64,000 bases of DNA from Octopus sinensis (GCF_006345805.1 NC_043000.1:67704001-67768000), one strand, 5' to 3'; positions 50,001-64,000 are shown, counted from the stretch's first letter. The notes: generated from the sequence alone by a model not told the origin. Made by a program: numbers and translations.

Positions 50001-52509
50001 TTGCCTATCAGGCCTTTATAGTTCGTTTCAAACAAAAGAGTTTCCAAGTCCATCTTTGTCAACAATGTTTCTCAACCTCATCTTCAGGATATGGAGTCAA
50101 TTAGGTTTCTTTGCTGCCATTTTTATGATGAGCACATTATTATTATAAAGATTCCCCCAACAGACCGGGAAAAGCCTTTGTTCTAAAATATCTAGAAATT
50201 CTTCCGTTGGCCTCATAATGTAATTCGAAATAAACAACTCCTACCCTACAAAGTTGTGTGTGTGTGTGTGTGAGCGCGCGTGTGTACGTACCTGTGTGCG
50301 CGTACGTGTGTGTGCGTACGTGTGTGTGCGTACGTGTGTGTGCGTACGTGTGTGTGCGTACGTGTGTGTGCGTACGTGTGTGTGCGTGCGGGTGTATGGG
50401 TGTGAGAGTGCGTGTGTGCGTGCGTGCGTGTGTGCGTGCGTGTGTGCGTGTGTGCGTGCGTGTGTGCGTACGTGCGTGTGTGTTTATTATTTTCACAATG
50501 CAAGTCCCCAAAAGGTATCTTTTCTGTCTGGCTTTCACGTTTTGAAATTTTTTAATTAAATGAAAATTTCCAAATTTAGTATATTGATGTAATTTTTCAC
50601 GTTGAATCTGTTGCTGTTATTCACTTGTTCCAGAAAAGTTTTAGAAAAATGTTACAGCGGTTTGAAGTTTGATTATTTTTACTCAATCAGAAAACAGGGT
50701 TTAGAAGCAGGCAATTTCTGCGTAATAACTGGAAGCTATATATTATGAAAAGTTGCAAAAAGTCGAACCATACGTTATACTACTATAGTCCTGTTCATGT
50801 AAACAACTAATGTCGAAAATTCAAAATCGAAAGTTTGATATACACTAGAGTTAGAGTCAGATTTTAAAGTTGGGGTTTTAGTTTAAACTTAGGATGTACG
50901 GCTAGAGTCAGGATTTAGGGTTGAGCTTTGGAATTACAATTAGGGTTTAGGGTTAGAGTAGGGACTTGCGTTGGAGTTTAAGGTTTGAATTAGCGTTTAG
51001 GATTAGGCTTAGGGTTTAGCGTTGGTGTTTAGGGTCACGCTGACCCGTGGATGATCTAGGGTTAATCAATTAGTAATATTTTTCGTGAACATTTTTCTAA
51101 AGTTTTTCTGGGACAAGTAAATACGATAATCAGATTCAGTGTGAAAACTTACATCAACATACCAAATTTGAAAATTTTAAATTTCAAACACTGTCACATC
51201 AACAGAAAAGGCCCGTTAGTTTTTCTGTCTAACAAAAGAATGCAAAACAAACGTTCGAACAGGAATGTAAACAATTTAAAAAGGAAAAAGTCCTCAATGA
51301 AGTTTGCGAATAAATTGTAATAATACTGTAATAAATTGTAATAATACTGTACTAATAGTTCAGTTCATGTAAACAATTAATACATTTTTTGAAGCGAAAA
51401 ATCAAAAACGTAAGTTCTGAATATCGGTACATAGGGGTTGTAATAGTTCTAAGCAGACAACAGCTTGGCTTGTTACTATGGAAATAGGCAGCAATATATC
51501 TGTAAATAGGCAAATTTTAAAAAGCTATCAAACTTTATTAATTTATTAATTTATGGCAAAAATGAATTTCATTTCCATAATTAGCATGCATAACTACATC
51601 ACTACACCAAATTTTAAATCAACTGTAACAAAATTGAAAGAATTGAAAAGTGAAAGCCTAAGAGAAAAAGCCCACAAAGGTTTTAAACTTTTAATAAATG
51701 CTTGAATAATCAATAGCGCTCACATGGTTGTTCTCTGGCAAATCGTATCTTGCCTGTGTTGAATGTTTCCTTCCTCCAAGACAAGCTGATGCTAATAATA
51801 ATTTCATGCGTTCATGAACAACTTGCAACTGTTCCTCTTGTTCATTATACCCTGTCAGAACTGTCAAGTCCTCAAACCATTCGTCACGAAAGTTAAAGAC
51901 AGTTATCCCTGTATAAAGAGCAGCTGCCGCTACAAGACTTGGTGGAAAGTAATTTCTTACGCTGAGAAAGTCATCATATAGCGCTAGTTCCACTAAATAG
52001 TTCATCATACTATACAAATCGTGACGAGGTTCTAATTTGAGAATAATCTGGTAATACGAAACGAAGACATATGGAGTCATAAAAAACATCCTACCATGAA
52101 AACGTTCAGAAACCGAAATGTGCATCCTATGAAGCTCTTCTAAAGAAGACTCCGGGTCAACTCTAGATGTCATATGAATAACATCATTACCCTCATCTGT
52201 TACACGATTATATATTGTGTCAAAGGCGATTCTAAGGCATGTAGCTCCAACACATTGCAGTTTTTCGCTTGAAATCGGTGGTGAGCTTCTAGAAGACAGG
52301 AATAAGTCAAATAATGCAACTGACAGGTGGATGACATCCAAAACGCTCTCGTAATAATCTGCGCATGCTATCATCCAGTTGACCACAGCCTTACGATCTT
52401 CAGGCTGAAAATTATGCTGACCATCTCGAAAATAATTACGGACTCTTTTTTGCCGTCTTTCCATTTCATATACATTGTTTAAATTTCTAACAACCTGTGA
52501 AAAATTCAT
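50001..52509. repeat. Tandem segmental duplication, unit 1 (cyclin gene plus about 1.7 kb downstream)
   Basis: Shares colinear blocks with 62118-64000: ttgcctatcagg..., tttctttgctgccatttt..., cagaaaagttt...aatgttacagcggttt, a TTAGGG-like tract, the 3' UTR and the CDS. Confidence 0.9.
51691..52509 (-). CDS. Intronless, divergent cyclin A/B-fold protein, copy 1 (272 aa)
   Basis: Single ORF with ACC-ATG start and an upstream in-frame TAA at 52528-52530; cyclin box DRKAVVNWM...HLSVALFDLFLS...EKLQCVGA; C-terminal box NYLVELALYDDFL...PSLVAAAALY; AATAAA about 150 nt after the stop (51534-51539). Confidence 0.85.
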   Translation of the reverse strand: MNFSQVVRNLNNVYEMERRQKRVRNYFRDGQHNFQPEDRKAVVNWMIACADYYESVLDVIHLSVALFDLFLSSRSSPPISSEKLQCVGATCLRIAFDTIYNRVTDEGNDVIHMTSRVDPESSLEELHRMHISVSERFHGRMFFMTPYVFVSYYQIILKLEPRHDLYSMMNYLVELALYDDFLSVRNYFPPSLVAAAALYTGITVFNFRDEWFEDLTVLTGYNEQEEQLQVVHERMKLLLASACLGGRKHSTQARYDLPENNHVSAIDYSSIY

Positions 52510-53009
52510 GGTCGTTCTTCTGCGAAATTACACGAAACTCATTTGTTTAGAAAGTATAGTGAAGGTGAAGTGGTGAAAATCAAAAATATCTCTCACTTGA
52601 TTACGTCATTCAAACGTAACAATCAGTAAATGTCGTTCCAGTTTATTTGAATGACCAAAATCTTAACTTGTATTTGGATATTAAACTATTTATTATTCTT
52701 TAACATTTGAAGTGTACTAAATTGATTGTTATTTACAATATGATAGTTAAGCAATATATAACCTTGAAATTATAAAACTGAACATGTGTTACAATTCAAT
52801 TACGAACATAGCATGAAAATAGCTATTTAATGCCTAAACCTATCATAATAAAATTGCAAAGCATAACCTTTATGATATTTGGGCCTATAAAACACATAAA
52901 TCATAATTCTAACCTATTTTCAAAGTTACTCAAATGCAAATGTGTGTATTTAATCAACATGCATACATACATACATATACACACACACACAGACAGACAG
53001 ACAGACAGA

Positions 53010-53261
53010 CAGACAACCGATGCAAACTTTGTGGAGTTACCACCATCATAAACAATTGTCCGAAAATGTCATCACGGTATTGTCTACCGATGAGACATGA
53101 CGTAGCTTGAACACTGTATAACGAAATCTGTCGAAAGAACAAAGAAATGAGAACCCACAGTATGGTGGAAGCCATAGCCACTCATAATAAAAAAAAAGAG
53201 TACTAGTGGAATGTCCCAATGAAAACCTCAACAAAATATAAACACAAAAGACCTAACATAA
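53010..53261 (+). mobile_element. R4/Dong-clade fragment, 5' part (interrupted by Chapaev3)
   Basis: RCKLCG...NNCPKMSSRYCLPMRHD (CCHC knuckle region)...KHKRPNI; matches the copy at 27790-27960. Confidence 0.8.
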
Positions 53262-62075: not shown

Positions 62076-62117
62076 ACGTATGTGTGTGTGGGTGAGTGTG
62101 TGGGTGTATGGTGTGTA

Positions 62118-64000
62118 TTGCCTATCAGGCATTTCAGACAATAAAGTTTCCAAGTCCATCTTTCTCAAAAATGTTTCCAGGCTATCTCAACCTCATCTTT
62201 GGGATATGGGGTAACTTTGATTTCTTTGCTGCCATTTTTATAATGGGCACATTATTATTATAAAGATTCTCCCGTCAGAACGAGGGAAAAGTTTCTTTTG
62301 ATATATCTAAAAATTCTTTCGATGGCCTGATACTGTAGTTCAAAAGAAGCAACTCAATAATACACTACTCTATAAAGTTTGCATGTGTGTGTGTGTGTGT
62401 GTGTGTGTGTGTGTTTGCGTTTAGTATTCTTACAAATGGATCTTTTCTGTCTGGCGCTAAACTTTTGAAATTTTGAAATTAAATGAAAACTTTCAAATTC
62501 AGTATATTGATGTAATTTTTAACGTTGAGTCTTTTGATGTTATTTACTTGTTTCAGAAAAGTTTTTGAACAATGTTACAGCGGTTTAAAGTTTGATTATT
62601 TTTATCCAATCAGAAAACAAGATTTGGAAGCTAGCAATTTCTGCGTAATAACTTTGATTAAACAAATGGAAGCTATATATTATGATATCGAAAGTTGTAA
62701 GAGGTTTTTCAAAAGTTTAAATGAATGAAGTCCTGGGAAACGTTATTTAGAACAGGAAGAATCGTCAATGGATTTTTTTCTTCCGAAACATTACAAAAGG
62801 ACAAACTGTTCTACTGTAGTTCGGACCATGTAAACAATTAAAAGCGAAAAGTCAAAAACGAAAGTTTGATATACACTAGGGTTATAGTTAGAGTTTATGG
62901 TTGGGAAGTAGGGTTAAACTTAGGGCGCACAGTTAAAGTTAGAATTTAAGGTTGAGTTTCAAAGTTACAATTAGAGTTTAGGGCTAGAGTTAGGGATTAG
63001 CGTTAAAGTTTAAGGTTAGAATTAGGGTTCAGGGTTAGACTTAGTGCTTAGGCTTGGCGTTTAAGCAAATTATAAAGAGCTATTAAACTTTTTATCGATT
63101 AATTTATGGCAAAAATGAGTTTCATCTCCATAATTAACATGCACAACTACATCAACACATCAAATTTGAAATCAATTGTAACAAAATTGAAGGGATTGAA
63201 AAGTAAAAGCCAAACAGAAGAGAACCCACAAGACTTTTAAACTTTAATTAATTACCATGATAACGAAGGTGCGAATAGTCAAAAGTGCTCATATAGTTGT
63301 TCTCTTGCAAATAGTAACGTGCCTGTGTTGAATGTATCTTTGGTTCAAGGTAAGCTGTTTTTAATAAGAATTTCATGCGTTCATGAACATCATTTATGTC
63401 TATCTCCTCTCCATTATACCCTGTCAGAACTGACAAGTCATCAAACCATCTGGTGTGGAAGCCAAGTGCAATTATCCCCGTATAAAGAGCGGTTGCCGCT
63501 ACAAGACTTGGTTTATAGTAACATTTTACGCTAAGAAAGTCATCATATAGCGCTAGTTCCAATACATAGTTGGTCATACTATACAAATCGTGATGGGGTT
63601 CCAATTTGAGAATAATATGGTAATACGAAAGAAAGACATAAGGAGTAACAAAAAACGTTTTACCTCTGAAACGGTTAATAACCAAAATATATATTCTACG
63701 AAGCTCATCTATAGAAGACTCTGGGTCGACTCTGGATGTCATAGCAACAATTGCAAAACCCTCATCTGTTTTAGCATTATATATTGTGTCAAAAGCAATT
63801 TTAATACATATAGCTCCAACACATTGCAGTTTTTCGCGTGAAAACAGCGGTGACTTTTCAGAAGACAAGAATAAGTCAAATAATGTAACTGATAGGTGTA
63901 AGATATCCATAAGACCGTAGTAATAATCTACACATGATATCATCCAGTTGACCACAACCTTACGATCTTCAGGGGAAAAAATATGGCGACCTTCTCGAAA
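62118..64000. repeat. Tandem segmental duplication, unit 2
   Basis: Homologous to 50001-52509 but lacks about 0.5 kb corresponding to roughly 51030-51505. Confidence 0.9.
63248..64000 (-). CDS. Intronless, divergent cyclin A/B-fold protein, copy 2 (5' end beyond the window)
   Basis: Frame is open to the window edge (FREGRHIFSPEDRKVVVNWM...); colinear with copy 1 without indels, 151/231 identical residues by hand count; stop TAA at 63248-63250. Confidence 0.85.
   Translation of the reverse strand, partial: FREGRHIFSPEDRKVVVNWMISCVDYYYGLMDILHLSVTLFDLFLSSEKSPLFSREKLQCVGAICIKIAFDTIYNAKTDEGFAIVAMTSRVDPESSIDELRRIYILVINRFRGKTFFVTPYVFLSYYHIILKLEPHHDLYSMTNYVLELALYDDFLSVKCYYKPSLVAATALYTGIIALGFHTRWFDDLSVLTGYNGEEIDINDVHERMKFLLKTAYLEPKIHSTQARYYLQENNYMSTFDYSHLRYHGN

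Follow-up and report, generated by a model that had tools for sequence, protein, structure and literature searches.

A tandem array of short single-exon cyclin-fold genes

Cyclins are defined by binding and activating cyclin-dependent kinases (CDKs). Here we describe an array of genes for cyclin-fold proteins in a 64,000-nucleotide stretch (the window) of Octopus sinensis chromosome CM016862.1 (GCA_006345805.1, about 67,704,001-67,768,000). A preliminary description had reported two colinear open reading frames (ORFs) of this type, lacking the residues that contact CDKs, and had considered that the array might continue. Both ORFs lie on the minus strand at the positions first given, and two more copies, one of them with a nonsense codon, were found upstream of copy 2 in the neighbouring DNA (L001). 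The array comprises four same-strand copies (residue numbers refer to cyclin A2 throughout):

51691-52509, minus strand: copy 1, a complete single-exon coding sequence of 272 amino acids, with two cyclin folds and without equivalents of K266, E295 and F304
63248-64000, minus strand: the part of copy 2 in the window, i.e. the final 250 codons of a 276-amino-acid coding sequence and the stop codon
L001:29376-30206: the full ORF of copy 2, 276 amino acids, of which the first 26 codons lie past the window end, with the start 78 nucleotides (nt) beyond it
L001:22142-22960, outside the window: copy 3, 94.5% identical in amino acids to copy 1, with a nonsense codon at codon 35
Upstream of copy 3, outside the window, same strand: copy 4, 271 amino acids

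The copies are spaced by 11.6, 7.2 and 12.1 kb, and the proteins of copies 1 and 2 share 65.7% amino acid identity. Neither the 10 kb past copy 4 nor the 51 kb below copy 1 contains a further copy. Counting of copies in related species, as had been proposed, gave the same layout in O. vulgaris as that of the four O. sinensis copies. These two species also have in common the CAG to TAG change that creates the nonsense codon of copy 3 (L004:13443-14261 in O. vulgaris). Copy 3 differs from copy 1 at few, mostly synonymous, positions in the first 600 nt and at many, mostly non-synonymous, positions in the final 220 nt. This uneven pattern suggests that its history is mosaic or involved gene conversion.

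The locus is syntenic across three Octopus species. The O. bimaculoides orthologue of copy 1 is P0003 (with P0002, on an unplaced contig) and that of copy 2 is P0005 (257 amino acids). The orthologues of copies 1 and 2 are in tandem in O. sinensis and O. vulgaris, whereas P0003 and P0005 are convergent and 16-17 kb apart (CM046604.1, 88.118 Mb on the plus strand and 88.136 Mb on the minus strand; L002, L003). This difference in orientation indicates a local inversion between the species or a difference in assembly. A 2.1-kb segment downstream of copy 1 (L006:15999-18134) aligns in inverted orientation upstream of P0003. Copy 4 had no visible orthologue within the 38 kb of O. bimaculoides examined.

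The ORFs had been described as intronless, and every reading frame examined in genomic DNA was indeed a single exon. In genomic DNA, each of the ten array copies is an uninterrupted single ORF, except for the nonsense codon of copy 3, and so are P0156 and P0168, two other family members listed below. Public gene models for the region are chimeric or inconsistent (L001:10001-30206; L004:10001-14261; L012:10001-15035). The P0004 model, misleadingly named 'cyclin-B2-1-like', spans 20.2 kb and places the opening codons of copy 4 in front of copy 2. The P0006 model avoids the stop codon of copy 3 by means of a 23-residue upstream mini-exon, a sequence that occurs twice in L001, and in the P0156 model the final 20 codons are spliced off. 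These models, which add or swap a small exon or join distant copies, as well as an acceptor-like 'tttcgcag' about 10 nt upstream of the copy 1 ATG, would fit the idea that the ORFs are exons of larger multi-exon genes. We consider this improbable: each copy has its own ATG, stop codon and conserved upstream segment, the unspliced P0156 ORF (268 amino acids) is intact and colinear with the Argonauta protein, and both copy 1 (in GCA_006345805.1) and the three O. bimaculoides genes carry single-exon annotations. An intron in the 5' untranslated region (UTR) ending at 'tttcgcag' is possible, and would leave the protein unchanged.

The cyclin fold and its CDK-contact residues

In the HMMER check suggested in the preliminary description, copy 1 matched the Pfam domains Cyclin_N with 48.9 bits (6.5e-13) and Cyclin_C with 41.7 bits (1.3e-10), and copy 2 matched them with 24.7 bits (2e-05) and 40.1 bits (4.2e-10), all above the curated cut-offs of 23 bits (Cyclin_N) and 22 bits (Cyclin_C). 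Of the 127 positions in the Cyclin_N profile, the match covers none past 84 and breaks off just ahead of the AFDTIY segment. Both domains were also found in P0156, P0007, P0008 and P0010. No F-box or other Pfam domain was detected in copies 1 and 2 (E up to 1) or in the other members tested (E up to 0.001); the family proteins, at roughly 257-276 residues, are too short to accommodate an F-box.

To compare individual positions, we used an alignment of 149 sequences, made up of 10 members of the family and the best canonical cyclin representatives, 139 in number. The structural residues had been reported as kept, and they are: the equivalents of R211, D240 and W217 are invariant in all 149 sequences, and Q254 is present in 134/139 canonical cyclins and in 10/10 family members. 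The family thereby keeps the buried Arg-Asp pair and the Trp of box 1, together with KLQ. An AlphaFold2 model of copy 1 made from this alignment (predicted local distance difference test, pLDDT, 95.6; predicted template modelling score, pTM, 0.93) displays two cyclin folds, with helix 3 two residues short and helix 4 lengthened. Its top Foldseek matches in the PDB were cyclin A2 (template modelling score, TM, 0.79-0.85) and cyclin B1 (0.81-0.83); matches to viral cyclins had a TM of 0.68 or less and an E of 5e-6 or worse.

The short N-terminus that had been noted comprises 35-37 residues ahead of the MRAIL equivalent (37 before DRKAV in copy 1), and these correspond in the alignment to the N-terminal helix seen in the crystallised fragment of cyclin A. 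No RxxL was found in the first 40 residues of any array copy, nor any KEN motif in the N-terminus, and the longer pattern RxxLxxxxN matched only at residue 162, and at residue 189 in P0002, inside the folded second domain. The N-terminal degradation region of cyclins is absent, with no room for a destruction box.

The CDK-contact residues behave differently from this conserved frame. In canonical cyclins a Lys-Glu pair (K266 and E295) hydrogen-bonds the loop before the PSTAIRE helix, and it is kept in cyclins B, E1, T1 and D3, in a viral cyclin and in Pho80 (PMC3590450). The near-invariance claimed for this pair was apparent in our counts, with K in 138/139 and E in 137/139 canonical cyclins. 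In the family, 10/10 members have lost the helix-3 dipeptide [S/A/C]-K. The preliminary description had read this site as a Lys to Asp change plus a two-residue gap; the gap is real, as the Lys and the preceding residue are deleted, but the substitution is not, since the Asp aligns with the first Glu of FEE. At the position of E295, the change to His or Tyr was recovered, with Arg, Leu and Phe in other members (H, H, H, Y, Y, R, L, F, Y and Y). Pairwise and profile HMMER alignments to cyclin A2 agree with each other ('ria..fdtiy' against 'llaskfeeiy', and 'rmhi' against 'rmeh'), so that even the profile alignment, which had been named as a way in which the two residues might be restored, leaves both of them missing. 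A third position, F304, is F, Y or W in 136/139 canonical cyclins and G in the five array-clade proteins; more distant members have I, H, Y, F and F. The array has lost the aromatic residue, and the rest of the family varies at this site. The family furthermore has a 6-residue insertion after helix 3, before helix 4. This pattern of residue loss is far beyond chance, and the loss of the Lys266 dipeptide and of Glu295 dates from the origin of the family.

The MRAIL substrate-docking patch, said to read DRKAV or DRKVV, is changed throughout: M210, which is M in 117/139 canonical cyclins, is D or N in all 10 members, and E220, which is E or D in 113/139, is A or S in all 10. The positions of I213, L214, W217, L253 and Q254 are occupied by A/V/I/T, V/L/I, W, L/M and Q, respectively. 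Since the hydrophobic positions are kept, the MRAIL/RxL docking patch is altered, not erased, with loss of its acidic residue.

Among the 139 canonical representatives, only P0095 lacks both K and E. It is a protein of 576 amino acids in which a protein kinase domain is fused to Cyclin_N and Cyclin_C, and the covalent linkage to a kinase may relax the need for the contact pair.

The residues missing from the array are those that matter experimentally. A triple alanine replacement of K266, E295 and F304 has been used to stop cyclins from binding Cdk1, and cyclin F, which naturally lacks all three, binds no CDK (PMC12356897). The proposal that the octopus family no longer binds or activates a canonical CDK, which we infer from sequence, agrees with this published mutagenesis (PMC12356897, PMC3590450).

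We considered the possibility that the proteins are still CDK activators, in which a remodelled interface (shorter helix 3, longer helix 4, Glu replaced) fits a canonical CDK or an equally divergent octopod one. The whole two-domain fold is kept, including the conserved N-terminal helix, which contacts the CDK in cyclin A, and P0095 provides a cyclin fold without K and E in one chain with a kinase domain. Furthermore, CDK activation is possible without the Lys-Glu pair, as in the case of p35 and CDK5. Yet, all three residues whose replacement abolishes binding are missing in the array copies (PMC12356897), and the pair is kept even in Pho80-Pho85 and cyclin T1-CDK9 (PMC3590450). We regard this as a serious but minority possibility.

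Extent, origin and duplication of the family

Six family-level matches (E from 5e-146 to 5e-37) came out of an exhaustive HMMER search of 1.84 billion representatives, in which ordinary cyclins began only at E = 8e-17, after a large gap in score. The family matches are limited to Octopus species, Argonauta hians and several sequencing runs and assemblies, in keeping with the lineage-specific family that had been proposed. Word-indexed searches with the family profile added no named relative to a set of nine proteins. Outside the array, the following members were identified:

P0007: O. bimaculoides, on another sequence, outside the array, 269 amino acids
P0008: the Argonauta hians protein
P0156 / P0009: a paralogue in O. 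sinensis / O. vulgaris; P0156 is 107 kb from the array, on the opposite strand
P0010 and P0168: a pair of 265 amino acids, from runs ERR12921337, ERR12921340, SRR9969974 and SRR8281680 and assembly ERZ21867824

In a neighbour-joining tree, the family forms a single long-stemmed clade, in which P0010 and P0168 are basal, followed by XP_029634932 (Octopus) with Argonauta, then P0007, then the array. From the placement with Argonauta, the family is older than the Octopus-Argonauta split. A fragment of 111 amino acids (P0011, Logan contigs of about 985 bp) falls near the array copies; its last 25 or so residues diverge in a frameshift-like manner, and it may be another decayed octopus copy or a read error. 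A literature search (LOC/XP identifiers, 'cyclin-B2-1-like' octopus, cephalopod cyclin expansions) found no paper on the family, which is apparently undescribed.

The family profile scored 80.9 bits against cyclin A2 (1e-21), 60 against B1, 53 against D1, 39 against E1 and 38 against cyclin F. With cyclin A2 also being the best structural match, the likeness to cyclin A noted at the outset was confirmed, and the family most likely derives from an A/B-type cyclin, closest to cyclin A, and is octopod-restricted.

An origin by capture from a virus, or as cargo of a transposable element, could be suspected in proteins that are short and intronless and have no N-terminal regulatory region, like herpesviral and giant-virus cyclins, and whose genes have transposon fragments between them. 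However, the matches to viral cyclins are weaker than those to cellular cyclins A and B, viral cyclins retain the Lys-Glu pair (PMC3590450), no viral or transposon gene is duplicated together with the copies, and the locus is syntenic in the three Octopus species. Viral origin was rejected on the structural ranking, in which cyclins A2 and B1 stand above the viral cyclins, and we rate the whole of this explanation as extremely unlikely.

The homology between copies extends beyond the ORFs, and the following flanking features were delimited in the window:

52510-52977, minus strand: copy 1 upstream flank, which may be a promoter or 5' UTR and is conserved in paralogues as well as in the orthologue of O. 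bimaculoides (468 bp, 92.5% identity to the Obim_P3 flank)
51155-51690, minus strand: copy 1 downstream flank, putative 3' UTR (520 aligned bp, 92.7% identity to the orthologue, 7 indels)
51542-51547 and 51534-51539: AATAAA signals, 143 and 151 nt after the copy 1 stop codon
61555-63247, minus strand: copy 2 downstream flank, orthologous to the P0005 flank (1668 aligned bp, 91.6%, 12 indels)
52601-52608, minus strand: the CRE/ATF-like motif TGACGTAA, about 100 nt upstream of the copy 1 ATG, a candidate element

Between paralogues, homology continues for about 350-500 bp on the upstream side of the ORFs and for 0.2-1.7 kb on the downstream side. Because these flanks are shared, the array must have grown by segmental duplication at the DNA level, carrying its regulatory flanks along. 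The CRE/ATF-like motif (ATGACGTA, containing TGACGT) lies about 100 nt from the ATG in 5/7 array copies (O. sinensis copies 1 and 2, O. bimaculoides P0003, P0005 and P0002). Copy 3 has it at about 50 nt, since 49 bp have been deleted between TGACGTAA and the ATG, and in copy 4 the site reads TGACGCAA. Upstream of P0010 and P0168, at about 30% protein identity, there are two TGACGT sites 17 nt apart (L007:~128-145; L011, upstream of 10001). By our own estimate, chance would provide about 0.1 site of the TGACGT type per 320 bp of such composition. The arrangement suggests that the motif is a conserved promoter element.

The preliminary description had called the family probably retro-derived, for which direct evidence was not found. 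Neither the copy 1 stop codon nor the AATAAA signals are followed by a poly(A) tract (target-site duplications were not searched for), and with the array having grown by DNA-level duplication, derivation from a retrocopy is unproven. The single-exon coding sequence and the missing N-terminus would fit an ancient retrocopy of a cyclin A mRNA, truncated at its 5' end, and in view of the age of the family such an origin is possible even though retrocopy marks are absent.

Between and below the copies there are remains of mobile elements, among them a mariner Transposase_1 fragment and a DDE_1 fragment, and the other 51 kb of the window hold microsatellites and transposon fragments. The mobile-element and ORF sites are:

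54021-54575, plus strand: an ORF of 184 amino acids without Pfam match
57751-58008, plus strand
10678-11346, minus strand
46055-46429, plus strand: an ORF of 124 amino acids without Pfam match

DNA at about 55791-56845, which is 1.2-2.3 kb past the 54021-54575 ORF, recurs near copy 2 in L001 with about 83% identity. Dense microsatellites, (TG)n/(GTGTGTGTGCGTAC)n, (CATA)n and (AT)n, are present at 50255-50483, 55792-55934 and 59762-60077, and many more in 1-50000. The GC content is low (28-41%), and the microsatellites yield many spurious long repetitive ORFs.

Selection on the array and a possible role of its proteins

The array might consist of plain pseudogenes, i.e. dead retrocopies or duplicates that drift neutrally. 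Some observations agree with this: pairwise dN/dS (the ratio of non-synonymous to synonymous rates) is about 1, the nonsense codon of copy 3 is common to O. sinensis and O. vulgaris, no evidence of expression was found, and the NCBI models of the region are inconsistent. Yet, 8/10 array copies across the three species are intact and there is no frameshift, although the ORFs are only 73-85% identical (15-27% nucleotide divergence) and the flanks of the same pairs have about one indel per 100 bp. With random substitution, the probability of finding no stop codon would be 0.003-0.05, and that of finding no indel at the density of the flanks 1e-4 to 4e-3. The start and stop positions are conserved back to Argonauta.

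Substitutions also avoid the core of the protein. The proportion of non-synonymous differences (pN) was 0.084 at canonically conserved positions versus 0.179 at variable ones (p = 4e-10), and the proportion of synonymous differences (pS) was the same in the two classes (0.14 and 0.145); pN/pS amounted to 0.60 in the core and 1.2-1.7 elsewhere. As conserved positions are avoided at equal pS, the fold is under purifying selection. Lastly, divergence is higher in the ORFs than in their flanks, contrary to what would be expected of neutral drift. For the three orthologous or closely related pairs, the identities were:

Copy 1 / P0003: ORF 84.5%; flanks 92.5% upstream, 92.7% downstream
Copy 2 / P0005: ORF 85.5%; flanks 94.9% upstream, 91.6% downstream
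P0003 / P0002: ORF 90.6%; flanks 97.4% upstream, 93.2% downstream

The open frames, the constrained core and the improbability of escaping stop codons and indels thus led us to reject the pseudogene alternative, which the preliminary description had named as a possible refutation, for the intact copies: neither copies 1, 2 and 4 nor any of the three genes of O. bimaculoides is a pseudogene. For copies 1, 2 and 4 this explanation is largely refuted, and as an account of the array it is very improbable.

The most unusual property of the genes is this evolution faster than the flanks, with dN/dS at or above 1 outside the core. The ratio of ORF to flank mismatches was 1.8-2.7 (p from 5e-8 to 2e-5), and orthologous intergenic segments further off had mismatch values of 0.062-0.090 versus 0.145-0.155 in the ORFs. 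Coding sequence thus changes about twice as much as the surrounding DNA, and amino acids outside the core about twice as fast as the neutral rate. Pairwise dN/dS by the method of Nei and Gojobori was 0.6-1.6, and 2.5 for P0003/P0002. In this last pair pN exceeded pS (0.108 versus 0.045, p = 0.006), as it did marginally in copy 2/P0005 (p = 0.049). The highest dN/dS values were those of codons 1-30 and 226-270; the array proteins vary least on the surface formed by helices 1 to 3 (DRKAVVNWMIAC, HLSVALFDLFLSS, EKLQCVGA). The intact copies are most likely under diversifying selection. Gene conversion between paralogues may inflate part of the ORF divergence of copy 1/P0003.

On balance, and with somewhat better than even confidence, we favour the view that the array belongs to a functional, protein-coding, octopod-restricted family, derived from A/B cyclins, that lacks the CDK contacts, acts independently of CDKs and evolves fast outside its core. 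The array proteins would neither bind nor activate a canonical CDK, and would serve as CDK-independent cyclin-fold binding proteins, decoys or adaptors. The surface from helix 1 to helix 3, where the family is best conserved, would probably be the site of binding, and the fast change of the N- and C-terminal helices may follow that of a partner which itself evolves rapidly.

Several points weigh against this view. One array copy, copy 3, is broken by a nonsense codon. The overall pairwise dN/dS, near 1, looks neutral when taken alone, and the selection tests are counting methods applied to few sequences, not codon-model likelihood tests. In copy 1/P0003, pS (0.14) is about twice the divergence of the adjacent flank (0.074), with pS near the flank value in the other two pairs; this excess could reflect gene conversion, a local mutation-rate effect or a bias of the counting method. 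A search of literature and databases found no support for expression (no transcript, RNA-seq data or paper). Logan contigs of about 1.7 kb have no poly(A) end, vary in extent between runs and look genomic. The loss of CDK binding is read from residues only, and a remodelled interface with a co-evolved CDK is possible. The AlphaFold2 model is biased to the canonical fold by an alignment made up mostly of canonical cyclins, and a model computed from five close family sequences alone had a pLDDT of 37 and was unusable.

A more specific proposal, which we put forward tentatively and consider rather unlikely, is that the proteins are 'CDK-blind' decoy cyclins engaged in genetic conflict, for example in the germline (meiotic drive or sperm competition) or with a pathogen that acts on the cell cycle of its host. 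Proteins with a cyclin-docking motif would then be sequestered in the conserved helix-1 groove, and positive selection would drive the diversification of the N- and C-terminal helices.

Known systems offer partial parallels to the family as we prefer to see it. Like cyclin A2 and the other A/B mitotic cyclins, the octopus proteins have two five-helix folds and an N-terminal helix, the R211-D240 pair, W217 and KLQ. They differ from these cyclins in that the destruction-box region and the helix-3 dipeptide are gone, six residues are inserted, and E295, F304 (in the array), M210 and E220 are changed; the octopus genes are, in addition, single-exon, fast-evolving and tandemly duplicated. Cyclin F (CCNF) shares with them the lack of CDK-contact residues, and uses its cyclin domain to bind partners (PMC12356897). 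It is, however, large, ancient and conserved and has an F-box, which the octopus family lacks, and its profile score is 38 bits as compared with 80.9 for cyclin A2. CNTD1, a meiotic protein of the COSA-1 type, is a cyclin-family protein reported to act without CDK binding in vivo (bioRxiv 10.1101/750596). Its short form has no N-terminal cyclin domain and the gene is single-copy, whereas the octopus proteins keep both folds, and no specific sequence relationship between the two was seen. To our knowledge, CNTD1 is not known to be under diversifying selection.

Recent, lineage-specific duplicates of atypical cell-cycle regulators are also found in the Speedy/RINGO (SPDYE) family of Homininae (bioRxiv 10.1101/354886). 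This is an analogy, as Speedy proteins are unrelated in sequence to cyclins and, unlike what we propose here, activate CDKs. Viral cyclins (gammaherpesvirus v-cyclins and those of giant viruses) are likewise short and intronless, with a small N-terminal region, but they keep the Lys-Glu pair and activate CDK6 (PMC3590450), and they match the octopus model less well in structure.

Tandem amplification and faster-than-neutral change mark the octopus family. We know of very few cyclin-fold proteins that work without a kinase, cyclin F and CNTD1 being examples. The family represents a natural experiment, in which an A-type scaffold without its CDK-binding residues has been kept open and folded since before the split of Octopus and Argonauta, and it adds a fast-evolving, lineage-restricted gene family to the innovations of cephalopods. 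If expressed, it would provide a tractable route to what the cyclin fold does without a CDK. If the proteins did turn out to be decoys in a genetic conflict, they would be, in the literature that we searched, the first adaptive, tandemly amplified, kinase-independent cyclin-fold proteins.

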